Shown here one piece after another: positions 2,162-63,445 of a DNA stretch of 64,000 nt. The position numbers were made by a program, and so were the translations under genes. Each line of letters begins with the position of its first letter. The stretch's first letter is position 1. This DNA comes from Hormiphora californensis (taxonomy: Eukaryota; Animalia; Ctenophora). Below the pieces are notes generated by a model. That model did not search any database and was not told the origin of the DNA. It was given only the letters and a program-made list of their open reading frames with translations. The stretch spans positions 3,472,001 to 3,536,000 of the forward strand of contig CM035361.1 of assembly GCA_020137815.1 (NCBI GenBank), in the 5' to 3' direction.

Positions 2162-3352
2162 CTGCTCTGTAGAAGTCAGATGCCGTGTCATCTTTAAACC
2201 TGATCTCCTTCACAACATCACCACCCCACCTTGTAACACATTTGTTATCTGAACTATCTGTGAACAGGTAGTTCAAAACCTCAACATTATTACATGTGAT
2301 GATCCAGGCGGTCTCTGTTTTGGTGATCGTCCAGATCTTATCCACCTCCACCGGTGGTTGCACTGGCAGGTCTATGTAGGAGTTGCAGAAGGCTATATAA
2401 TACTGCATTGGGGAGGAGAACTTCACAATCACACCACCCATATAGTTGCCGTACACCATTACCCAGATCTTCTCATCACTACCAAGTGCAGAGTCTGTCT
2501 TTATCTGGAGAGATGTTCTCTCCAGGTCCCAGGGTATACTCACTTCCTGCCCTGGAGCTGTCCAGTCTGAAGGGTATAACGTATTTTAATTTATTGAACG
2601 AGCCTGTTTGATAGATATGATAGTGGTTGGAGGCCGAGTTGTCAATCGAGAGATCCGTACATACTGAATGATATTGTTTAAAAACTAGTAACTGAAAAAG
2701 CAGTGAGAAAAAGACAAAAGAAAGCTGGAAAAATTGATACTGAAGTTTTACTTTTTGTATATATACGTGATTTAATGCTAAAACCATGTGCTGTTAAGTG
2801 GTACACATTAAGTTTACCTGCTCTGTAGAAGTCAGATGCTGCGTCATAATGGTAAAACTGGATTTTATCCACAACATCTCCACCCAACTTAGCAGCACAA
2901 TAGCTCTCTGAACTATCTGCGAACAGGTACTTCAGCACCTCCACATTATTACATGTGATAATCCAGGCGGTCTCTGTTTTGGTGATCGTCCAGATCTTAT
3001 CCACATCAACCGGGGGCTGCACTGGCAGGTTTGTCCATTCGCTGGTGCAGTAGGTTATAAGATACTGCACTGGGGAGGAGAACTTCACATACACACTACC
3101 GATATAGTTGCTCTCCTTGTACATCCTCACATAGATCTTCTCATCACTGCCCAGTGTAGAGTCTGTTTTTATCTGGAGAGATGTTCTCTCCAGGTCCCAG
3201 GGTATCTTTACATACTTTTCTACAGCTGTCCAGTCTGAAGGGTATAACGCATTGTATTTTACTAGTGGACCCAGGCCATCCTACGGATGGCATAAACTGA
3301 TTGGTTTTCATGTCTCTCACTTCTCAGTTTCCTCTTAGTCCTACCTCTCTGT

Positions 3353-3407
<55 letters not shown>

Positions 3408-6288
3408 TCTTTGTCTATTTTACCACTCTATATGGGGGATCTCATCACGCACAGTGGACTACTAGGTGAAATGTGGGATCTGATACTCACTGGGATGATC
3501 TGATAGTCACTGGGGTGGGGTGATCATGGGTGGGGTGATCTGATCCTCAGTAGGGTGATCTGATCATGCATGTTGGGTGCTCCTAGCATGCTGCTTGTTA
3601 CGTGATCTGATCTTGATGACGACGATTTAGGGACCACCAAACATGCATGGGAGGGATCAAGTTTCGGGTGTTTTTGCATTATATAGTAAGATTGAACGAG
3701 CCTGTGTGATATATGATACATATTTTATGGAAAACTCATGGGTACTGTACCTTGCAGTTCATGGTAGCTTTGACCCAGCTTACGTGATATATAGTACATA
3801 GTATATTGATGCATCAAATTTAGATCCTTACCTGTTCTGTAGAAGTCAGATGCTTTGTCACTTTTATAACTAAACTGGATCTTCTCCACAACATCACCAC
3901 TCCACTTTGGAACACAGTCGCTATCTGAACTATCTGCAAACTGGTAGTTCAGCACTTCCACATCGTTACATGTGATAATCCAGGCGGTCTCTGTTTTGTT
4001 GATTGTCCAGATCTTATCCACCTCCACCGGTGGTTGCACTGGCAGGTCTATGTAGGAGTTGCAGAAGGCTATATAATACTGCATTGGGGAAGAGAACTTC
4101 ACAATCACACCACCCATATAGTTGCCGTACACCATTACCCAGATCCTCTCATCACTGCCAAGTGCAGAGTCTGTCTTTATCTGGAGAGATGTTCTCTCCA
4201 GGTCCAAGGGTATCTTCACATTTCGCTCTACAGCTGTCCAGTCTGAAGGGTATAACGTATTTTAGTTTATTGAACGAGCCTGTTTGATAAATATGATATT
4301 GGTTGGAGGCCGAGTTGTCAATCGAGAGATCCGGGCATTCTGTAATATGATATTGTGGTGTTTAAAAACTAGTAACTGAAAAAGCAGTGAGAAAAAGACA
4401 AGAGAAAGCTGGAAAAATTGATACTGAAGTTTTAATTTTTGTATATATACGTGATTTAATGCTAAACCCATGTGCTGTTAAGTGGTACACATTAAGTTTA
4501 CCTGCTCTGTAGAAGTCAGATGCTGTGTCCATGTAACTGACAAACTGGATCTGCTTCACAATATCACCACTCCACTTTGGAACACAGTTGCTATTTGAAC
4601 TATCTGCGAACAGGTACTTCAGCACCTCCACATTATTACATGTGATGATGAGGGTAGACTCTGTTTTGGTGATCGTCCAGATCTTATCCACCTCCACCGG
4701 GGGTTGTACTGGCAGGTCTTTAAAGCCGCTGATGCAGTAGCCTATTATATACGTCATTGGGGAGGAGAACTTCACAACCACATAACTGATCCAGCTGCTG
4801 TCCTTGTCGTACATGTACACATAGATGTCCTTACCACTACCAAGTGTAGAGTCTGTCTTTATCTGGAGAGATGTTTCCTCCAGGTCCCAGGGTATCTTCA
4901 CATCATCCCGTTCTACAGCTATCCAGTCTGAAGGGTATAACGCATTGTATTTTATTGAACGAGCCTGTGTGATATATGATACATATTTTATGGAAAACTC
5001 ATGGGTACTGTACCTTGCAGTTCATTGGGGGGGGGGGGCGGCTGGAGTTTTTGAAGTTTTTGAAGTCGACTTCAAAAACTTCAAAAACTAAAAAGGGTAG
5101 GAAAATTCAAAAACTTCAAAAACTTCAAATCCCTATAAACCAGGAAATTATCGAAATTTCGGCTTGATTTTGTTCAATTAGGTGGTTTTTCGATATTCTG
5201 GATGGTTTAAGTGGAAAACAAATTAAAAATACGAAATTTTAAAAAACAAAATCGAAAGTCATTTTTGTAATATGATTTGAGTTTCGAAATTTTCAGGATA
5301 CTTTTTTCTATAAAAACTCATGGAGAGCACTAATTCTGAAAAAAAAATTTTAGAAATTTTTGAAGTCAACTTTTGAAGTCAACTTTTGAAGTCAACTTTT
5401 GAAGTCAACTTTGCTGAAAAATTTGTGTTTCATGATCCCATGATCATATGTATTAACATGTTAAACATGTCTATCCCCTGTAAAAAGCTCAGATTTTTTT
5501 TTTAAAAGCGCCAATAAAGAATTATCAATACTTTTGAAGTTTTTGAAGTCGACTTCATAAACTTCAAAAACTAAAATAGGTAGGAAACTTCCACTTTAGC
5601 CCCCCCCCCGTTCATTGTAGCTTTGAACCAGCCTACGTGATATGTTACTAAACCCACGTGCTGTGCAGTACCTACATTAAATTTAGACCCTTACCTCCTC
5701 TATAGAAGTCAGATGCTCTGTCAGTACTGTGATCAAACTCGATCTCCTCCACGACATCACCACCCCACCTTGTAACACATGTGTTATCTGAACTATCTGC
5801 GAACAGGTAGTTCAGCACCTCAACATTATTACATGTGATGATGAGGGCAGACTCTGTTTTGGTGATCGTCCAGATCTTATCCACCTCTGCCGGGGGTTGC
5901 ACTGGCAGGTCTGTGGTGCTGCAGCAGAAGCCTATCCCATACTGCATTGTGGAGGAGAACTTCACACCCACATTACCGATGTGGTTGATGTCCTTGTCGT
6001 ACATGTCCACAAAGATCCACTCATCACTACCAAGTGTAGAGTCCGTCTTTATCTGGAGAGATGTTGCCTCCAGGTCCCAGGGTATCTTCACATCATCCCG
6101 CTTTACAGCTGTCCAGTCTGAAGGGGATAACGTATTGTAGTTTTTTGAAGGAGCCTGTGGGCTAAAAAATAACACGTTTTATGAACTATATAGCTATAAA
6201 GCATCAAATATTTTATATTGTTTGACAAACCTGCAGTGAGAACAACTGTTCCACACAATGCAGCTGTGAAGAGAAGGAGGCGTATCAT
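2162..6288 (-). CDS. Secreted/surface protein with tandem ~140-aa beta-rich variable domains (3' end not seen)
   Basis: Signal exon 6288-6231 (MIRLLLFTAALCGTVVLTA, phase 1), then exons 6117-5695, 4927-4502, 4242-3832, 3234-2818, 2566-2162. Each has a CTTCAG acceptor and G|GTAA donor, is a multiple of 3 (423, 426, 411, 417, 405 nt), is open, and encodes DW..PWDLE.TSLQIKTDS...VDKIWTI.KTE...TCN.VEVL...ASDFYR. Confidence 0.9.
3262..3691 (-). mobile_element. Non-autonomous Helitron (430 bp)
   Basis: Minus strand starts TCTTACTATATAA and ends with hairpin GCCATCCGTAGGATGGC + CTGGGTCCACTAG; inserted between A and T with no TSD; the empty site GCATTGTATTTTA|TTGAACGAGCC is present in the paralogous intron at ~4942-4965. 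Confidence 0.9.
5028..5609. mobile_element. Non-autonomous DNA element with poly-G/poly-C termini, TTTTTGAAG subterminal repeats and 8-bp TSD
   Basis: GTTCATTG duplicated at 5020-5027 and 5610-5617; empty site in paralogous intron at ~3751-3780; sister copy at 61958-62796. Confidence 0.85.
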
Positions 6289-6683: not shown

Positions 6684-7261
6684 GTAATTTTATCAGAACT
6701 CAATTAAAGAAGTTATTCAAAAAGGACGTCCAGGGGAGGGGGATCAGGTAGCCAATTTCGGAAATCTCTGGACAGGGGGGAGACCTCAGCAATAAATAGT
6801 ATAAACGAATTTTTAAAATCGGAGGCGCTATAAAAGTGCTTCAAGTATAAGCGCTTTTAAAGCGCTATAAAAAGGCTTTAAATGCATTTTGTGCGCTTTG
6901 AGGCGGTAAATAGCGCTGTATTATGTCTCCCATATATTGCAAATTATAAAAAACTTTAAAAGCGCTATACTTCGTGTATTTTATAACAGAAGAAACAGAG
7001 GGAACTCAGCTACAAAGATCATCCAGACAGGGGAGAGCTAGATAGCTTGTTGTTCTGCAGTACTGGGCATTGTAAGTGAAAAACCATCGCTATAACGTGT
7101 CAGCCAATGGCGTAGTAGAGAAAAGCCACGTGTTCCTCATGTGAAATCTTTTCAGCCAATGGGAGAAGGCAACGATCAGTACTGCAGAACAGAGTCTAGC
7201 TCAACGAGAGGATTTGAACAGAGGGAGAGCAGAATGAATCAGCAGTAGAGATAGAAATAGG

Positions 7262-7735
<474 letters not shown>

Positions 7736-8599
7736 AATGGGACTCAGCTGATGTTTCTAAGTTTGGAAAATCGGGAATAGAGAGGACCGTTTATTGTAGA
7801 GATAGATTTAGAAAAGTGCAAAAAGGAAAATGTGTGTGCTATCACCCCTAAAAATGTTCCAAATCAGAGCGCTTTCCAGCGCTCAGCCGTACGAGTTTTA
7901 ACATTCTTGTACTGAAAAAGTGTAATCCTAGAAGCGCATAGTTTATGTTACTGTCACTCCTTTGCTTTGTATCTAATCAAAGAATGAGCCTCAATTTTTG
8001 TATATCTCGAAGAGATCTTTCGATAACTTGAGGGTCATTTTTTGATCGGATGCGAAATGAAGGAGGTTCAGGCACGACTGTTTTCCCCGTATTTATTGCA
8101 TCTGAAATATGCATTGGAACACACTTTTTCAGTACAATAATGTTAAAAGTCACGCAGCAGAGCGCTGGGAAGCGCCCTCATTTTGGAATTTTTTTCTGCA
8201 CGCCAAAAAATCTGAAAAAATAATATATAGTCGGACCCCAATTGAGTGGTCCCCATTTTAGTGGCACCCCGATTTAGTGCCAGGATTCCCCCCCTCCCCC
8301 CGAGGATGCCATTAAATCGGGGTCCGACTGCAGTTTAAGGTAGCGACTGGCTATTTGAAACGGCGGCTAATTTGAAAAACCCCCTCTACAGGCCAGCAGG
8401 TGCACCCGATTTGGATTTTAAGAAATCAGTGGGCTTGGCATGAGTACTGCAACTAGCCCACTGATGTCTAAAAATCCAAATCTGGTGCAACTGCTAAGCT
8501 TTAGAGGGGGTTTTCAAATTACGCCATTTAAATGCCATCGCTACCTAAAGCCATTTTACACTTTTCACCCCCCAACCGTGCGCGTGCGATTTTTTTTTA

Positions 8600-13611: not shown

Positions 13612-14253
13612 GTAAGACACCACATGTTTTCTGTAAAGGAAAACCTTTTTTGTTTTTTTATTTGTTTACTTGTGCAAGCTAGCATGTCACTGTATGCCAC
13701 AGCATGAGAAAGCTCAATTCACTTAAATTTGTTAGTACAAATATTTTGGATTGGCCACTTGCATATGCCGATATCGGCCATTGCATTTCCATGTCATCAA
13801 TAGTAACTCAGAAATCTTAGTGTCAGCTGTAGCTCCCAAGAAAGAAATATCTGCAAAAAGATTAATACGTTTGTCTAAAATTTGGTTTTACTTCTACAAT
13901 TGTGTAGTTTCATCAGGCACTATTTGAGATGTATGAAGTATATTGCTAACCCAATTGCCACTGAAGAATTGCGGACTGTTATTAATACTGGGCCCCGATT
14001 CACCGGAACCCCTAATCCCAATATACTTTCTCCCGATCAGCATCCCGATAAATCGTGGTCTGACTGTGATAATTGTTGAGATACTAACATCACTAAAATT
14101 TACTTGGCTAAGCGTTTCATTTCCTGCATTATAAAGCTCAACCCCCCCCCCCCCCCGAATTTATCTCTGCAGCTTAGTAAGTTTAATATTTACTAAATAT
14201 GCTTTCTCTTTCCGCCCTTACTGTGCAGTATATCCGCTTTACGCTCACACGTG

Positions 14254-14450
<197 letters not shown>

Positions 14451-15141
14451 CCTCTATACAACACAGGTCCAGTCTTTGTTTGGGCGCTCTGCGACCAGTT
14501 ACATGCAGAAGTTCTGCTGCAAAGCTCTCCCTTTTTGTTCCTTGTACCACTTATATCCTTATTAGTGCAGCGGCCCATTGGAGAATTGTATGTTAACTAC
14601 ACAGCTGTTATATAGACAACCCTCGTAACTTATACTTTTCATATCATTTTTAGTCATAATACAGGGTGTCCCAGTGTCTTTGCATCACCTGCGATTTTGG
14701 GTCATGACCGGGCTCCATTAAACTAACCAAAACTCATCGAAAAATTGATCAAAATGGTCTAACAAAAACCAGTGTTCTGGCGAACATGTTGGTGGCAAGA
14801 TTGACGTTCTAAGTCTTACCAATCGTCAGATATATCGTCGTAAAGTCAAAAATACATGTTCATGACATCCGACCGGGGTTCACGTTTTGAAAAATTCACA
14901 AATGCAAAGTTGCTCGGATCACATTGCATCCCTTATAAGAGTTGTAGGAAATTGTCTGGCGGTCATATTGGTACCCGGGTTTTTGTCCTAGCTCAATGTT
15001 TAGAGTGTCTTATTCCTATATTGTAGACTTTATTTCGCTCGAATATTTTAGACTTGATTTCGCTGGAATATTATAGACTTGATTTCGCTTAAATATTGTA
15101 GACTAAATCAAGCTTGATTTCGCTTTAATCTATAAACGTAT

Positions 15142-15402: not shown

Positions 15403-17468
15403 GGCAATTTTGCATTTGCGGGCATCGCACTATAGACGCAGTACCCACGTACTATAGACGCATTATAAACGCATTATAAACGCATTATAGACGCATTATA
15501 GACACACGCAATATAGACGCAATTTCGTAAGCAGCACTATAGACGCAATATAGACGCATTATAACAGCAATATAAACGCATTTTTATAGACGCGACGCAG
15601 TATAGCCGCATTATAGGCGCACTACCCACCCCAAAATCACCTTATAGACGCACTATAGACGCATTATAGACTGACTATAGCAGCACCATAAACGCTACAT
15701 AGACCCATATAGACGCATGATAGAAGCATTATAGACGCAAATCGCTTTTTATAGACGCCGCGTCTATAAAAAACGTGCTTTTTAAAGAAGCACTTTAGAC
15801 GTACTCCAGGCTACAGTGCGATATTTGAGGCGCAGTTGGGCGTTTTATAAACGCATTTTTGTCGCATATAAAAGGAAGCAGTATAGACGCATTATAGACG
15901 CATTATAGCCGCATGTGTGCGAACGCGAAATCGATAAAGACGTAATATAGACGCAAAATAAAAAGGAGAGGGAGAGAGATCTCTCTCCCTCTCCTCCCTC
16001 GAGGGAGGGAGGGAGGGAGAGGGAAGGAGAGGGAAAGAGAGGGAGGGACTGAGGGAGGGGTACAGGGACAGAAACAGACGGATAAAGACCTGAGACAGAA
16101 GGACAGAGTAAGATGGGAAGATAGTAAGATGGGAAGATAGTAAGATGGGAAGATAGTAAGATGGGAAGATAGTAAGATGGGAAGATAGTAAGATGGGAAG
16201 ATAGTAAGATGGGAAGATAGTAAGATGGGAAGATAGTAAGATGGGAAGATAGTAAGATGGGAAGATAGTAAGATGGGAAGATAGTAAGATGGGAAGATAG
16301 TAAGATGGGAAGATAGTAAGATGGGAAGATAGTAAGATGGGAAGATAGTAAGATGGGAAGATAGTAAGATGGGAAGATAGTAAGATGGGAAGATAGTAAG
16401 ATGGGAAGATAGTAAGATGGGAAGATAGTAAGATGGGAAGATAGTAAGATGGGAAGATAGTAAGATGGGAAGATAGTAAGATGGGAAGATAGTAAGATGG
16501 GAAGATAGTAAGATGGGAAGATAGTAAGATGGGAAGATAGTAAGATGGGAAGATAGTAAGATGGGAAGATAGTAAGATGGGAAGATAGTAAGATGGGAAG
16601 ATAGTAAGATGGGAAGATAGTGATATAGGGACGGAGTGAGACAGAAAAAGAGTGAGACAGAAAAAGACAGAGATGGAAACAAACGGACAGAGACAGACGG
16701 ACGGACAAACACGCGCTTATTATCTCCCTCTCTGTCTCACTCTCTCTCTCCACTCTCCATCTTAATCTCTCTCCATCTTACTCTGTCCGTCTGTCTCAGA
16801 TCTGTGCTGTGTCCATCTGTCTCTGTCTGATCTGTCTCTGTATCCCTCCCTCTTTCCCTCTCCTCCCCTCTCCCTCCCTCCCTCCCTCCCTCTAGTCTCT
16901 CTCCCTCTCCTTCTTATTAATTGCGTCTATATTGCGTCTTTATCGATTTCGCGCACATGCGTCTATAATGCGTCTATAATGCGTCTATACTGCTTCCTTT
17001 TATATGCGACAAAAATGCGTTTATAGTTCGCCCAACTGCGCCTCAAATATGGCAGCGTGCGTCTGAGTACGTCTATAGTGCTTCTTAAAAAAGCACGTTT
17101 TTTATAGACGCGGCGTCTATAAAAAGCGATTTGCGTCTATAATGCTTCTATTATGCGTCTATATGGGTCTATGTAGCGTTTATGGTGCTGCTATAGTCAG
17201 TCTATAATGCGTCTATAGTGCGTCTATAAGGTGATTTTGGGGTGGGTAGTGCGCCTATAATGCGGCTATACTGCGTCGCGTCTATAAAAATGCGTTTATA
17301 TTGCTGTTATAATGCGTCTATATTGCGTCTATAGTGCTGCTTACGAAATTGCGTCTATATTGCGTGTGTCTATAATGCGTCTATAATGCGTTTATAATGC
17401 GTTTATAATGCGTCTATAGTACGTGGGTACTGCGTCTATAGTGCGATGCCCGCAAATGCAAAATTGCC
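15403..17468. mobile_element. Foldback/Mutator-like element with long TIRs and central 16-bp minisatellite
   Basis: GGCAATTTTGCATTTGCGGGC... and ...GCCCGCAAATGCAAAATTGCC arms of ~600-700 bp built of TATAGACGCA repeats; 9-bp flanks CACAGTATA / CACATTATA. Confidence 0.85.
16107..16620. repeat. 16-bp minisatellite (AGTAAGATGGGAAGAT) ~32 copies
   Basis: Perfect tandem array. Confidence 0.95.
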
Positions 17469-19544: not shown

Positions 19545-21496
19545 TCAAAACTTTTCACTTAGAAACTCTTGCTTCCTATCATCATCATCATCATCACCAC
19601 TTCCCCTAGAAGTAGATTTTAGTGTTCTCAACACCATCGCAGCAATTGTCCCACCCAGCACAAAAAACACAATGTAAACACTCTTCAAACTTCCTGCATG
19701 AATCATTAAATCCACATAAGGTCCGAATAATGTTCCCAAAAAGGCACTGCCAAAGAGCATCCCATTTGCGGTTCCCCTCAGCGCAGGAGGGAACACCTCC
19801 ATTGCCAATAGACTCAGAACATGAACAATACCCCCAACAACAGCCGCCGTCACGAGAGCACCTAGCAGCAGGAGAGATCCCGATATACAGTACATTTGGG
19901 TGATGAGAGAGGGAATTAGGAAGCCGAGGAGAATGAATAGAGCGTTAGGCCGGGAAGTGTTCCGATCCGTCAACAATCTGTGGGTCAAATACCCTCCAAA
20001 GATGAGAGAAATGTAGACAAAAGTAAGAAGAAGATACTCAAAATGATCATTCCAAGTTTCAGTTTGAACCTTCATATCCTCCAGAATGTCAGCAAGATGG
20101 CAGTAGCGCGCGCCAATCATTATAGGAAGTACAAAAGTTACCATTGTAAGCACTGCAGTACAGGTGAACCACGCGCAGCTGAGGGTGAGCACCGGACCGA
20201 AGAATCGGGCCATTAGTCCCTGCCAGCTTCCTCGCTCAGCCACCGTAGATTCACCAACCCTTTCCTCTTCAATACTCCACTCGAACTTGACCCTGTTAGT
20301 CATCCTGATCTTGGCCAGAACGTACAATTGTCCTTCAGTGTGCCCACAGAGCCCGTACCACCGTGGACTCTCGTCAATCACAAAGTAACTCAGAAAGAAT
20401 GAGATAGTGTGGGGGATTGCTAAGAGAGCGTAATGCCATCTCCACCCCACATCACGCAGCCCAAAGTAGGTAATTGTACAAATGACAAGGTTTATCAGGT
20501 AGGTTGTGGAATTGAGGAGGAAGAGAGAGAAGGATCTGGTTGTGGTCGGAGTCGCTTCACTGTATAATGTAGTTGAGAGCACCAAACTCATTCCAATAGC
20601 AGTCCCCGCCACCACACTACACACAATGAACAAGTAGTAATGGGGTGTAATTGAGCCAATTAGCATGGAAACTGAGCTAATTAGCGTTGTGGGGATTATC
20701 AGAGTTCGCCGGCCGTGGAGATCTCCGAACTTACCACCCACCACGCTACCTGCAATGGAGATGAAGAGGGTCCAGCTATAAGCTAAAATAAAGAGGGATC
20801 AGGGCCGTCAGAGCAAATTGGCCTGACCCTATTCTCGCAAGAATTATGGTCAGATCATTGGCAGCTAACAGAGGAGGGAGAGATGAATCTAATGAATATA
20901 TTTCCAATAAAACATACCAATTAGGCAGAAGAGAGCGAAGAAAGTGTAGACTAGACGATCCTCAAGGAGGGAAAGGTGCCAATAGGTGTTTTGATTGCTT
21001 ACAACTGCCGTACCTGGAATACAATTTATTATAGCTCCTCAATCATGGGATTATGCGAGAAGCGGAATTATGTTAAATTAAATTAAAATTTAGCTAGAAT
21101 GAAGTTGAAAGCTAAGCCAGGTTAAAAAAGAAAGTTTAATGTTAATAAAAGTTTAAAGTTAAAATTTACCCAGAATTATGTGAGAGAAAGCCACACTCCT
21201 CGCCAGCGCTGTCGCCACCAACAGAGTGTACTGGTACCTGGAGAAGAAAAGAGAAATGTTGTTTCAAGTAGCCAGCCACTATGATTTTTGCCGTACATAA
21301 GGCCGGGTGCAAAACACGATTTTCAAAGAAATGGGAGAATACCAGCTCTACAATGTTATTTAACTAATTGATTAATTAACTAATTAATTAATAATTACCT
21401 TCCAAAACCATATTTATCCAGCACATCTCCAGCTGGAAGTGCCTGTTGTGTGAGGGAGGTGTCCAGAAGGAAGGAACACTCTGAACCTCCACCCAT
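19545..21496 (-). CDS. MFS transporter, SV2/SVOP (SLC22-related) like, ~488 aa
   Basis: Exons 21496-21399, 21237-21170, 21013-20918, 20749-19545 splice in frame (1467 nt). Motifs DVLDKYGFGRYQ, GKFGDLHGRR (MFS motif A), GWRW, DESPRW, EVFPPALRGTANG; many hydrophobic helices. Confidence 0.9.
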
Positions 21497-22806: not shown

Positions 22807-36250
<13,444 letters not shown>

Positions 36251-42383: not shown

Positions 42384-42856
42384 CCATGGTAACTGTGGTA
42401 ACCATGGTAACTGTGGTAACCATGGTAACAGTGAGCAGTAATGAATTACAATCATCAAGTTGGTAACTACAACATTAACGATAAGTTTTGAGATTTCTGC
42501 TGAAGAGACCCTCAGTAAATTATTTAGAATAACATTGTGTGTTTGTGTGTTTGTGTGTACATCATGAGAGAAATATTTTTAGCGTTTCCAAAATCTGACC
42601 TATTTTTTATTTATTGCAATACAGTCGGACCCCGATTTACCAGAACCCCGATTAACCGTATCCGGTATTACCCCGATTTACCGAACGGCTACACTTCCTC
42701 CGATACCTCAAATCAATCCTCAAACAGCCCTGTAAATCGGGGTCTGACTGTAATTCTTCAGTCCACCGGTTTCTTCACTAAGCGTATCTCTAGATGCCAT
42801 AACGATACCACTTCTTCATCGTTTTCCCACGACTCAGTTTCAACCGACAACTTGTT

Positions 42857-42943
<87 letters not shown>

Positions 42944-43194
42944 CGTATCCGGTTGGCCTAGAGGAAGGGAGAATCCCTATATGCTGCAGAAACTAACACG
43001 CCCCTATCCATTTTTTGTCTACACTGTGTATATTTTCTCCGAAGAATTTATATCTAAGCTGAACTTTAATTATTGTGGAGCTACCAAAACTGAACGGACG
43101 TTGTAAAACTGCAGCATTGGTGGTGATCCAGTGGCATCCAGTGGTGGATTGAGTAACTCAGTAAGAGTTGGAGCAAGGCAAATCTAGTGGTAAA

Positions 43195-46100
43195 ATGCCG
43201 TTCAAGCAGTTTTCCGTTTTACTTGATAATCCAGCTAGCATCTACTACTCAGGTAAAATGCTGTTTTAATTTTGAGTATACAGTTGGACCCCGATTTGGT
43301 GGCCCCCGATTTAGTGGCATCCTGATTTAGTGACAGGATTTTCCCCCCGAGGATGCCACTAAATCGGGTTCCGACTGTACCTCCGTTTGTTTTGTTTGAT
43401 TTCTTTAGTTACTGATCTTTCACCTTTTCTCTGATCCTAGATCTGAACATTCCCCATCTATCTACAGGTCAATTAGTGACGGGTAGAGTCCTCTTAGCAC
43501 CCAATAAAGACAGGGTATTTTCTAGTGTCACTCTGGCGGTGGTTGGGGAAGCTAATGTATACTGGACAGAGTAAGTATCTCACAAAGTCACCCATTTTAT
43601 TGCATAATAACTAAGGATTAATTTCATAACCAACGGTAGTAGAATATAGGATTTGGGCAAATTGCTGACATTTGGGCAAGTCGAGAGATTGGATACTCCA
43701 TGCCCCCCTCCCTGAAATTCGAACTTTGGAGTTTCCTATCTTGCTAGCTCGAGTCTTTGATACCCTGACCGTAATCCGATTATTTTCAGGTATGAAAGCA
43801 GGAAAGGGAAACAGATGGTTCACCACACCAACACAGAACCTTACTTCGAGCAATCATTCCTTCTAATGTCTAAAAATGTGTTGATCAAAACAGGTATACA
43901 TGGGTGGAGGGAAAGGCCAAAAAACCAAACCCGCTTTTTTTTAGCTTTTTGGCTTTATTCCCGACAATTTCTGGCTTTTTTGATATGGCTTTTTTTTTGA
44001 TCTGGCTTTTTTGATCTGGTTTTTTTGATCTGGTTTTTATTGATGTTTTTCCCTAAAAATGTATGTCCAAAAAAGTCAAACCCGCCCTGAAATCCGGGAT
44101 TGATCTGGCTCTTTTGGCCTTACCCCATGCCACCCCCCCCCCCCTTACATTGAACTTTCCTATTGGGTCCTGTTGTCACTGTCAACAAGACATGATAATT
44201 GCATCTATAATTAATTCTTCTAATTCTATAATTATTACAGGTGTTCACCTTTTTCCGTTTAAGTTTCAACTTCCCCAGTCCCTACCTTCCTCGTTTGAGG
44301 GGGAATTTGGATCGGTCAGATATCGAGTAACCTGTATAGCTACTAAATCAGGTATGTATTATTGTGTTTTACCATAATTAATGGTAATTATGTAATTAGT
44401 CTCTAATTATCCCCCACCCCACCTTCAGTTTGGTGTTATTTGCGGGCATTTGCCCTGGAAACAGTTACATTTTACACACAAGCTTTAATATGTGTTTTAG
44501 AACTGTCTGGCGCCTCGACCCCATCTGAGCCGCTCATCATACCCCATTTGATTCGAAGACAGTGCGCTCACTGCCAAACAGGTTTTAGAGCAGTCAGAGA
44601 ATATTTGCCTGACAGTGCCCTACAACAAATAAGTGACTCCCTTCCTACAGGAGACAAAAGGACAAGTTCCTCGACAGATATCACAGTGATCTCCCTATAT
44701 AATCTCAACATGGTTCCATCCAGTGCAGAACCTGTATGTCTGTGTAGATGCAAACAACTCCCCATCACCATCCAACCAGCAAATGCAGGTATGTAAACAG
44801 TTACCAATCACCATTCAACCAGCCAACGCAGGTACATCATTATATCGACTTCCTTCAATTTCGAAAGGTTTACAAAGGGCATGTCACCCACCCCTGGAAA
44901 CCAAAAGTCATCTTGTTTTTTTGGAATTGGTCTCCCCCGTCCCTGATTAGTTCAACTTATTCCCACTATCCCAGTTGCCAGTTCCACATTTTCTTTACTT
45001 TTCAGGTGTTGCCACGGTAACGATGACATGCCCCAAATCTGGATTTGTCCCGGGAGAGACGATAATAGCCAATCTGGAACTCAGGAATTGTTCGGACAAA
45101 GTTTTAAAAAGGGTGAGTTTTTAGATCTATGAAGCTAACTTGGTCCTTGATCAGTAGTTGTTATGCTCTACATCTAACCCTCCGTGCAGTCGTGGTGAAA
45201 CAGGATCAAGGCAAATCAGTGGAATAGTTCCCAGAAATGGGGATATATTCTTTTTCGGGTTCAAGACTGGACTTTTAGTACAAATTTTGTTTTATTTTCC
45301 ATGTTTCTAACCGTGAGCACCACAATTAATAATTGTAATTAATTAACACAATTAATATTTTACAGGTGTGTCTCCAGTTGGTCTCGGTGGAAACTTACAA
45401 AAGTAAAATGAGGTCCCGTACAATCAGACGGAGTGTCAGTGTCACACATTATGAGAACAGTCGCGTTTATCCTAATTGCTCATTGACATGGAATGAGGTA
45501 TGAGCCACCCCCTTTGTTCTGTCCCTCCCCCTTCTCCCTCTCCCGACATGTATATAATGAGCCTGAAATGAGCCTGAAATGAGCCTGACGTGGAATGATG
45601 TATGAGCTGAGCAACCCCAATCCCCATTCTCCATGTCCCTCCCCTTCTCCCCAACCCACCCCCTTCTCCCTCTCGATCCCTCCCCCTTCTCCCTCCCCCC
45701 TTCTACCCGAACCCACCCCCTTATCCCTCCCCTTCTCCCCGAACCCACCCTTCTCCCTCCCCTTCTCCCCAACCCACCCCCTTCTCCCGAACCCAGTCCC
45801 TTCTCCCGAACCCAGTCCCTTCTCCCGAACCCAGTCCCTTCTCCCGAACCCAGTCCCTTCTCCCGAACCCAGTCCCTTCTCCCGAACCCAGTCCCTTCTC
45901 CCGAACCCAGTCCCTTCTCCCGAACCCAGTCCCTTCTCCCGAACCCAGTCCCTTCTCCCGAACCCAGTCCCTTCTCCCGAACCCAGTCCCTTCTCCCGAA
46001 CCCAGTCCCTTCTCCCGAACCCAGCCCCTTCTCCCGAACCCAGTCCCTTCTCCCGAACCCAGTCCCTTCTCCCGAACCCAGTCCCTTCTCCCGAACCCAG

Positions 46101-47326
46101 TCCCTTCTCCCGAACCCAGTCCCTTCTCCCGAACCCAGTCCCTTCTCCCGAACCCAGTCCCTTCTCCCTCCCCTTCTCCCCAACCCACCCCCTTCTCCCG
46201 AACCCAGTCCCTTCTCCCGAACCCAGTCCCTTCTCCCGAACCCAGTCCCTTCTCCCGAACCCAGTCCCTTCTCCCGAACCCAGTCCCTTCTCCCGAACCC
46301 ACGGGCCACCCTCTAGTCTCGCCAACCCACTCCCTTCCCCTAGGCTCTCCCTAACCCTTCTCTCCTCAGCAGGAAATTCGTCATAGTGTTGTTTTTATGA
46401 CCACTCCCCAAAAAAAATACATGCCCGTATACTTTTATAACCCATGTTTCTCATCGACTCAGGTTTGTGTGATGGTACCCCACCGACTACCTCCCACTGG
46501 ACTCCCTTGTTGCAGTATCATCTCTATAAAGTACCTCCTTGAGCTGTCATTCAAAGTGGGAGGGGAACAGTTGGCTTTCTCAACTGAGCTAGTAATTGGG
46601 ACCATCCCTCTCCGGCAACGACAGGTGTGTGTCTCCTCACTTTAAGGGGGGGGGGGAGCCAAATCCGCCCTGAAATCCGGGATTGATCTGTTTTTATTGT
46701 CTTGTCCCCATGTGTTACTCAAATTTATTAATACACTTAATAAATTTAATTATTAGTTTAATTAATTGACCCCATTGCAGGGTGGAGGAGGCAACATGAA
46801 AAGAAGCAGGACCTACGAGAGAATATCCACATCATACGAGGATATCCCACCCGCTGTCAGCTCCGATCACCATTCTTCAGTTTTTGGCAACACGCCAGGA
46901 TCCTCCAGAAGCAGCAGAACTCGTAGTAAATCTGTTGGAGGGCCGGAGATGACATTTGATCAGATTAATGTACCGAAAAAGCCCCTCTCTCGTGTATCCC
47001 ACAACCACAGAAGTGTATCTACTCACAATTTGGACAATGTTGAATTTAATCGGGCTCTCCGGCTGACAGATCCAGGTGATACTCTGCTAAGCGCCACTCG
47101 GGGTCAAATTCCACACCATGATCTGCCTGAGGGGGTTTATGATCGGTATTCCAGTAGGAAAGAGGAACAGGGAGGTGGAGGAGGTACTGGTAGTGTTGGA
47201 CATGGTGGAGGTGGAGGTGGAGGTGGATCGTATGTTAGGTTGAATAGCAATTGGGCTCGTGGTGGTGGTGGTGAGGGTGGTTCGGGAGATGAGGAAACGT
47301 TTAATAAGATACTGATGTCTGTTTAG
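43195..47326 (+). CDS. Alpha-arrestin (arrestin domain-containing, ARRDC-like), 9 exons
   Basis: Exons 43195-43252, 43468-43570, 43790-43893, 44241-44351, 44651-44788, 45006-45112, 45366-45497, 46463-46624, 46781-47326. Motifs IYYSGQLVTGRV, GEANVYWTE, GVHLFPFKFQLPQSLPSSFEGEFGSVRY, PKSGFVPGETI, IISIKYLL, LVIGTIPL. Confidence 0.9.
45780..46300. repeat. 19-bp minisatellite (CCCTTCTCCCGAACCCAGT) in arrestin intron 7
   Basis: Tandem array of roughly 25 copies. Confidence 0.95.

Positions 47327-53267: not shown

Positions 53268-63445
<10,178 letters not shown>

Follow-up and report, generated by a model that had tools for sequence, protein, structure and literature searches.

Predicted galectin-fold modules with a hypervariable face in a tandem-exon gene of the ctenophore Hormiphora californensis

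What is encoded by a run of tandem exons that share a nearly invariant framework and differ strongly in a few segments, and is the difference favoured by selection? This question is raised by a minus-strand gene whose signal and domain exons lie at positions 2162-6288 of a 64,000-nucleotide stretch of the Hormiphora californensis genome (assembly GCA_020137815.1, contig CM035361.1, positions 3,472,001 to 3,536,000 of the forward strand). The whole stretch is called the window, and coordinates refer to it unless a contig or locus is named. The original prediction, made from the letters of the window, proposed a variable recognition receptor built from domain cassettes. The locus belongs to a family of presumably secreted modules with a predicted galectin fold, joined to sushi repeats, which occurs across the ctenophores and had not been described before; this module family is hugely expanded in the Pleurobrachiidae. 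The reading favoured here, with a probability of roughly 0.6, is that the gene belongs to a large ctenophore-specific family of secreted modular proteins with a selected variable face, which would serve in the multivalent binding of diverse ligands.

Gene anatomy and the predicted fold

Six-frame translation and canonical splice sites bear out a signal exon followed by five phase 1-1 exons with one domain each, as had been proposed:

6231-6288, minus strand: signal-peptide exon, encoding MIRLLLFTAALCGTVVLTA plus 1 base; GT donor, phase 1; signal peptide recognised by inspection
5695-6117, minus strand: domain exon E1 (galectin-fold module), phase 1-1; query of the AlphaFold and structure searches
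4502-4927, minus strand: domain exon E2, phase 1-1
3832-4242, minus strand: domain exon E3, phase 1-1
2818-3234, minus strand: domain exon E4, phase 1-1
2162-2566, minus strand: domain exon E5, the last domain exon, phase 1-1; the next exon, past its donor, is a sushi exon lying outside the window

Six-frame translation with a motif scan gave exactly five copies of a 134-141-aa unit on the minus strand, one unit of 135-142 aa per full exon (in-frame references for E1-E5: 5699-6118, 4506-4928, 3836-4243, 2822-3235 and 2166-2567). All five acceptors read TTCAG/AC, and all donors read xxG/GTAAG or GTAAA. Each domain exon begins with two bases of a split codon and ends with one, the split codon being always G+AC (Asp); the exon end lies one codon and one base past DFYR. 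Stops or frameshifts are absent (0/5), and a scan of the 64-kb window with the family hidden Markov model found no sixth domain copy. The copies were recovered as repeats at 63-92% ungapped nucleotide identity. Their alignment confirms the near-invariant framework motifs, three invariant Cys (C65, C96 and C114 in E1 numbering) and the variable segments with in-frame indels that had been noticed in the sequence. E3 and E5 share their variable strands, so that there are four distinct variable sets, as the earlier lists of variable segments imply.

The gene is not confined to 2162-6288, since sushi and sushi-like exons follow further along. The downstream sushi exon starts about 180 bases beyond the window's first base on the minus strand (L032:9802-9981(-)). 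It is phase 1-1, has the splice sites TTTCAG/TT (acceptor) and AAAG/GTAAT (donor), and matches the whole Pfam model PF00084 (model positions 1-56) with 28 bits, above the cut-off of 20.7, at E 3e-6. A second sushi-like exon with four Cys is located about 480 bases beyond the window's first base; it has no Pfam match at E <= 0.001. No conserved C-terminal anchor exon was found after the last sushi exon in 12 loci, where only microsatellites and, in some paralogs, an AATAAA-containing 3' motif are present. Some paralogs stop directly after the last sushi-like exon (KCIRLSEF-stop), with the AATAAA-containing motif, common to loci, about 80 bases on; at least part of the family is therefore presumably secreted without an anchor. 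The term receptor is thus not sustained, as no transmembrane or anchor exon was identified. A motif of about 50 nt that includes ATCAAATAAAAGTAGCTCGGAACTTTTATTTGG is conserved soon after the stop codon in three paralogs (L034, L035 and L042), and is probably a common 3' untranslated region and polyadenylation element.

The AlphaFold model of E1, computed with 86 diverse sequences, is an all-β domain with a predicted local distance difference test score (pLDDT) of 97.2 and a predicted template modelling score (pTM) of 0.90; it supersedes an earlier run with 33 close paralogs, which gave a pLDDT of 69. The model strands are 21-25, 34-40, 46-53, 59-62, 66-70, 81-87, 91-96, 99-105 and 125-128. Galectin carbohydrate-recognition domains (CRDs) lead both structure searches. 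Foldseek placed them at the top of its PDB matches (E 2e-5, template modelling (TM) score 0.5-0.62), and in a VIA-align comparison with 48,161 representative PDB chains they took all of ranks 1-16 (Z 8.8-10.1), with 116-127 of 140 residues aligned at a root-mean-square deviation of 3.0-3.7. Other ConA-like modules came next in the VIA-align ranking (GH32 and GH16 β-sandwiches, LG domains). The earlier guess of a galectin/ConA-like β-sandwich is hence right at the level of the fold. ESM Atlas matches at 0.93, including a glucanase fragment and viral proteins, were set aside as unrelated clusters, at most a faint echo of the ConA-like fold.

In the model, the galectin CRDs (e.g. PDB 4ylz, 5nld and 5glt) are the nearest structural neighbours, likewise two-sheet β-sandwiches of about 135-140 aa. 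However, the domain has no sequence match to Pfam Gal-bind_lectin or to any PDB chain, and the positions that would match the sugar-binding residues of galectins are the hypervariable ones here. Galectins are not known to have a signal peptide and contain one or two CRDs; whereas the ctenophore domain occurs with a signal peptide, three invariant Cys, and long arrays with sushi modules.

Variable positions, selection and mosaic exons

The distribution of variation was examined in the 72 unique exon copies obtained from eleven 10-kb arrays, out of at least 460 candidate exons in the genome. The entropy per column, in bits, is given in parentheses:

Strand 34-40: variable 34 (3.3), 36 (3.6), 38 (3.9); conserved 35 (0.6), 37 (0.8)
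Strand 46-54: variable 46 (3.0), 49 (3.4), 51 (3.4), 53 (2.6); conserved 47 (0.3), 50 (0.8), 52 (0.8), 54 (0.3)
Strand 59-65: variable 61 (3.4), 63 (2.9); conserved 60 (0.1), 62 (0.8), 65 (0)
Strand 125-129: variable 127 (3.4), 129 (3.1); conserved 126 (0.2), 128 (0)

In these four strands the entropy alternates sharply between 2.5-3.9 and 0-0.8 bits, as had been noticed earlier for the five exons. Hydrophobic residues (I, V, V, F, Y, I, I, F) occupy the conserved partner positions, and therefore the variable residues should face the solvent on that sheet. The variable strands form consecutive hairpins together with the C-terminal strand; by strand order, we take them to correspond to the galectin S-sheet, which holds the sugar site. 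The other sheet (21-25, 81-87, 91-96 and 99-105) is conserved almost throughout, with only T86 and L92 reaching about 1.5 bits, so that a functional constraint probably acts on its outer face as well. The composition of the 11 outward positions (12% Tyr, 5% Trp, 13% Lys, 10% Gly, 8% Ser, 8% Arg) agrees with the earlier observation that the variation is rich in Tyr and Trp.

Selection was estimated first for site classes that were set beforehand from the five window exons only, to avoid picking sites by their own variability. Hypervariable (HV) sites carry at least 3 different residues among the five exons, and framework sites are identical in all five. The outward, inward and loop sets were chosen with the help of the structure. 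Nonsynonymous (dN) and synonymous (dS) divergence was then calculated by the Nei-Gojobori method (NG86) in 33 phylogenetically independent nearest-neighbour pairs from 67 non-window copies (bootstrap 95% confidence intervals, CI, in parentheses):

HV, window-defined: 28 codons; dN 0.49, dS 0.33; dN/dS 1.50 (1.23-1.95)
Intermediate: 35 codons; dN 0.20, dS 0.22; dN/dS 0.91 (0.75-1.19)
Framework: 76 codons; dN 0.07, dS 0.31; dN/dS 0.23 (0.20-0.26)
HV, 25 closest pairs: 28 codons; dN 0.40, dS 0.24; dN/dS 1.65
Framework, 25 closest pairs: 76 codons; dN 0.05, dS 0.24; dN/dS 0.21
Outward strand positions: 11 codons; dN 0.76, dS 0.42; dN/dS 1.83 (1.43-2.53)
Interleaved inward positions: 11 codons; dN 0.055, dS 0.40; dN/dS 0.14 (0.10-0.19)
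Variable loops: 18 codons; dN 0.35, dS 0.32; dN/dS 1.10 (0.85-1.45)

With dN/dS above 1 at the outward positions, strong purifying selection on the interleaved ones and equal dS in both, these values support the proposal that one exposed face is diversifying. Equal dS in the classes makes a local mutational hot spot unlikely, and likewise misalignment or gene conversion that spares the variable parts.

Two paired tracts show that the exons are mosaics:

3990-4527, minus strand: recent duplication or gene-conversion tract, covering the 3' end of E2, the intron and most of E3; paired with 2310-2843
2310-2843, minus strand: partner tract, covering the 3' end of E4, the intron and most of E5

The two tracts show 97-100% identity in 40-base windows, broken by a divergent patch at the exon N-terminus, where the first codons differ (VERNVK in E3, PGQEVS in E5). 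Over codons ~21-80, E3 and E5 are 98-100% identical, as is the upstream intron, and the same range is given by the central two thirds of E3. Beyond the tract, their C-terminal thirds are 11-17% different, and E5 is there nearer to E1 and to copies on other contigs. The pattern reads as the footprint of patchy conversion or unequal exchange. In the runs of three samples there are contigs that repeat the reference without a difference along the variable strands of E4 (X1, X2) and E2 (X1, X5). These runs consist of short unitigs, and thousands of paralogous pieces pile up on the exons, so that differing letters cannot be taken for alleles, nor depth for copy number. Judged from the sequences, the diversity is germline-encoded and not somatic.

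Family members in the genome and in other ctenophores

The six-frame genome search with E1 gave at least 460 first-look candidate exons. All of the 150 scored candidates have E <= 4e-42 and are located on contigs C1-C13, and 148/150 are free of stops. The signal exon had 70 genome candidates, the 40 scored ones being 84-100% identical; signal-exon copies thus number at least 40-70 in the genome. Copy number, on which the original prediction partly depended, is very high. One copy of the signal exon with its flanks (C12:3,591,302-3,591,379 (+), about 113 kb away) matches at 100% across 78 of the 79 bases used in the search, and therefore a very recent paralog of the gene's 5' end exists. The eleven sampled arrays contain the same three exon types (signal, domain and sushi) in many orders, always co-oriented; for example, signal-DOM-DOM-sushi x6, alternating DOM-sushi, or DOM x3-sushi x3. 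As the sushi exons and paralogous arrays also have phase 1-1 symmetry, it is a general property of shuffled extracellular modules here, and by itself it is no sign of regulated exon choice.

Searched against 1.84 billion cluster representatives, a profile built from 33 copies retrieved 1444 of them at E <= 1e-3, of which 834 reached E <= 1e-10. All representatives bearing names are from Pleurobrachia bachei, Mnemiopsis leidyi or Bolinopsis microptera; the rest are short ENA contigs. The top protein matches come from the sister genus Pleurobrachia, whose entries overall have E 1e-39 to 1e-65 and 59-76% identity. At least eight Pleurobrachia homologues were deposited as 'putative secretory peptide' (UniProt: -15, M4H1V7; -39, M4H2I4; -41, M4H265; -43, M4H1R6; -47, M4H1E0; -51, M4H267; -54, M4H2I9; -55, M4H1W5). 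They have the same signal peptide and are 59-71% identical across the full domain (E 1e-39 to 1e-51); for example, 'secretory peptide-47' begins MIRLLLFTAVFCGTVVLTA, spliced straight onto DWTAVE. Judging from the name, these homologues belong to the 72 predicted prohormones of the Pleurobrachia genome. They differ from the present gene in that they were annotated as candidate prohormones and are mostly single-domain: the signal exon is correctly spliced to the domain, and most of the entries then read into the next intron (DFYRAG-KG...). They are not known to have been described as a folded domain family or as variable. Other Pleurobrachia models contain 2-4 domains in series plus sushi. Among distant members, the domain is combined with TSP1 repeats (P0017) or, in Bolinopsis P0086, with acidic linkers and a hydrophobic C-terminal tail.

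The five exons have no Pfam match even at E <= 10, and the domain has none in 86 family members at E <= 1. No PDB sequence match was obtained with a single exon or with the profile, and full-text literature searches found no paper describing the domain family. The statement that the domain belongs to no characterised family therefore stands for Pfam and PDB sequences; however, the family was not wholly unseen, because its Pleurobrachia members are in GenBank and UniProt.

Several other elements are found in and around the gene. E1 and E2 stand farther apart because of an insertion in the intron between them; it is flanked on both sides by 'gttcatt', of which the uninterrupted intron form is seen at 3765-3790, upstream of E3. 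The insertion looks like a non-autonomous DNA transposon (miniature inverted-repeat transposable element), and its inverted repeat 5046-5086 / 5532-5572 is 98% complementary. Downstream of E5, a near-perfect 120-nt palindrome (tccaagctttaatacaaggtacaccacgag... and its complement) is flanked by related direct repeats of about 115 nt (1328-1443 and 1721-1836), and is probably another small foldback element. Past the downstream end of the gene (L031/L032, C12:3,452,001-3,472,000) a microsatellite and a gag-pol retroelement are located, together with zinc-finger genes that run on the opposite strand. An unrelated neighbouring gene lies within the window, and long 8-, 13-, 19- and 32-bp tandem-repeat arrays fill a noticeable part of it:

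5033-5612, ~580 bp, no strand assigned: insertion between E1 and E2; terminal inverted repeats of 41 nt, G10/C10 ends
1500-1620: palindrome
19545-20744, minus strand: 399-aa open frame, Sugar_tr (E 8e-22) and MFS_1 (E 9e-21)
7184-8000, 14166-14541, 15947-16700, 33435-35546, 42772-43300, 45627-46370, 56586-56883 and 59980-60500: tandem-repeat arrays
C12:3,464,056-3,467,983, minus strand: gag-pol retroelement, open frames of 303 and 1049 aa
Downstream of the gene, plus strand: several C2H2 zinc-finger open frames, at least 3 related copies

Explanations and biological meaning

According to the favoured reading, the product would consist of a signal peptide, five tandem galectin-type modules of about 140 aa, at least one sushi (complement control protein, CCP) module and a second sushi-like one. 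Each module would combine an invariant sheet and core with a second sheet whose solvent-facing residues (34/36/38, 46/49/51/53, 61/63 and 127/129) and adjoining loops are hypervariable, with Tyr, Trp, Lys, Arg, Gly and Ser frequent among the variable residues. The diversity would stem from tandem duplication of exons and genes together with patchy gene conversion from exon to exon, and positive selection on the variable face would maintain it. Multivalent binding of diverse ligands is the most likely role; these could be glycans or proteins from microbes, prey or another non-self source. Binding would take place on the variable sheet, while packing, oligomerisation or docking would fall to the constant sheet and the sushi modules.

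Several observations weigh against this reading or limit it. In structure the domain is only moderately like galectins (TM ~0.6, 5-12% identity), and it lacks their sugar-binding signature; the domain is therefore not filed as a galectin, and glycan binding is only one possibility. The single contiguous variable face is deduced from the alternation and the order of the strands rather than mapped on a surface. The second sushi-like exon has two possible ends, a CGAT/GTAAGT donor or read-through to RCKS-stop. One possible RNA run gave nothing on the locus, and the gene model is sequence-based. Moreover, ctenophores readily fuse between individuals (PMC11565835), which does not favour a role in allorecognition. 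The absolute dN/dS values carry the main caveat. The 150-base intron flanks are at chance identity (0.55-0.65; null 0.56) in about 25/33 pairs, far beyond the exon dS of ~0.1-0.3. This contrast suggests that the exons are homogenised by short conversion tracts which halt at the non-homologous introns, or that synonymous sites are constrained. The dS is thus probably below the true neutral divergence; however, a low dS does not explain dN > dS within the same codons.

That caveat leads to the view that there is no adaptive diversification at all, only unconstrained surface residues, with dN/dS > 1 as an artefact of depressed dS, misalignment in the indel-rich segments or the choice of sites. 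Besides the low exon dS, such a view can draw on the variable loops, which alone give a dN/dS of 1.10 (CI 0.85-1.45), and on single sites, none of which passes a binomial test after multiple-test correction, the NG86 pair counts being coarse. It is nevertheless quite unlikely, because dS is the same in variable and framework codons, which means that conversion or misalignment is not class-specific. The excess also persists in the close pairs alone and with sites defined from exons other than those measured. The CI of the 11 outward positions (1.43-2.53) is well above 1, and NG86 without correction for transition bias tends to understate dN/dS. Diversity might alternatively be produced by Dscam-like alternative splicing, the symmetric exons being skipped or used singly so that one gene yields many isoforms. 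Any subset of the phase 1-1 exons would be in frame, and the RefSeq isoforms of Bolinopsis LOC134814094 (1167 vs 961 aa) differ by exactly one domain-plus-linker unit; several Pleurobrachia sequences consist of the signal peptide and a single domain followed by the next intron. However, the differing Bolinopsis unit is a near-identical repeat, for which read mapping can fake skipping, and the single-domain entries may be incomplete assemblies, if not real intron-retaining isoforms. Phase 1-1 is generic for exon-shuffled extracellular modules, no RNA was found for this locus, the 2-4 domains in series of Pleurobrachia models speak against mutually exclusive use, and hundreds of germline paralogous exons already supply diversity. 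Only a slender chance is left to this explanation.

A secretion of tentacle or gland cells, with a prey-capture, adhesive or toxin-like function, could also vary through an arms race with prey or through rapid turnover. In Mnemiopsis, the set of candidate colloblast genes is enriched in signal peptides, in genes specific to ctenophores and in sushi/lectin domains (PMC6278862). The present family is, as venom-type families are, lineage-specific, secreted, tandemly expanded and fast-evolving at exposed residues. Such an origin seems unlikely all the same. No family member could be linked to the colloblast or tentacle gene lists, the family is present in the lobates Mnemiopsis and Bolinopsis too, and the strict split between invariant and variable sheets in many-module arrays with sushi looks like binding modules rather than toxins or glue. 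Neuropeptide or prohormone precursors, as suggested by the database name of the Pleurobrachia homologues and their place among the predicted prohormones, are very improbable: the 140-aa β-sandwich is predicted with very high confidence and has a conserved hydrophobic core and three invariant Cys, the domain occurs in arrays with sushi and TSP1 modules, and no repeated short peptides between dibasic sites are found in the alignment. The short 'peptide' entries end by intron read-through after DFYRAG/GTAAG.

The favoured reading, a selected variable face on secreted modules, has a working analogy in the snail FREPs, sea-urchin 185/333, bivalve C1q and C-type lectins, and amphioxus/Ciona VCBPs, which are large lineage-specific secreted multigene families, lectin-like or Ig-like, with concentrated variability and evidence of diversifying selection; their domains, however, are unrelated. 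The lamprey VLRs also gather variation on one face of a repeated scaffold; whereas the germline VLR gene is incomplete and is filled in by copying from flanking cassettes without splice sites, no sign of somatic assembly is seen here, the five exons being complete with canonical splice sites and the variable strands in other samples being identical to the reference. The in-frame cassette exons recall the insect Dscam, from which the locus differs in that there is no evidence of mutually exclusive exon clusters and the homologues carry several domains in series.

The domain family is among the largest extracellular families in the genome, and its pattern of variation is the classic one of a binding surface that selection diversifies. 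Because its introns are saturated while synonymous sites are well conserved, the family also lends itself to the study of exon-limited concerted evolution. If the present interpretation is true, it would correct the reading of several Pleurobrachia 'prohormones', and would bear on the counts of ctenophore neuropeptide candidates. Surveys based on Pfam domains have called the ctenophore immune-receptor complement reduced or unusual (PMC11797021; PMC11565835); a domain without a Pfam model is invisible to such surveys. If the ligands are microbial or prey molecules, the family would represent a recognition repertoire that is new and evolved independently, and the galectin fold would have been put to a new use. 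More speculatively, and at less than even odds, the hundreds of hypervariable germline modules (at least 460 exons in ~40-70 or more genes), diversified by exon duplication, selection on one sheet and segmental conversion that reshuffles variable strands among exons, and possibly widened by exon skipping, could form the main recognition system of ctenophores for non-self such as microbes or prey; if true, this would be an independently evolved counterpart of the diversified immune-type receptors in other animals.

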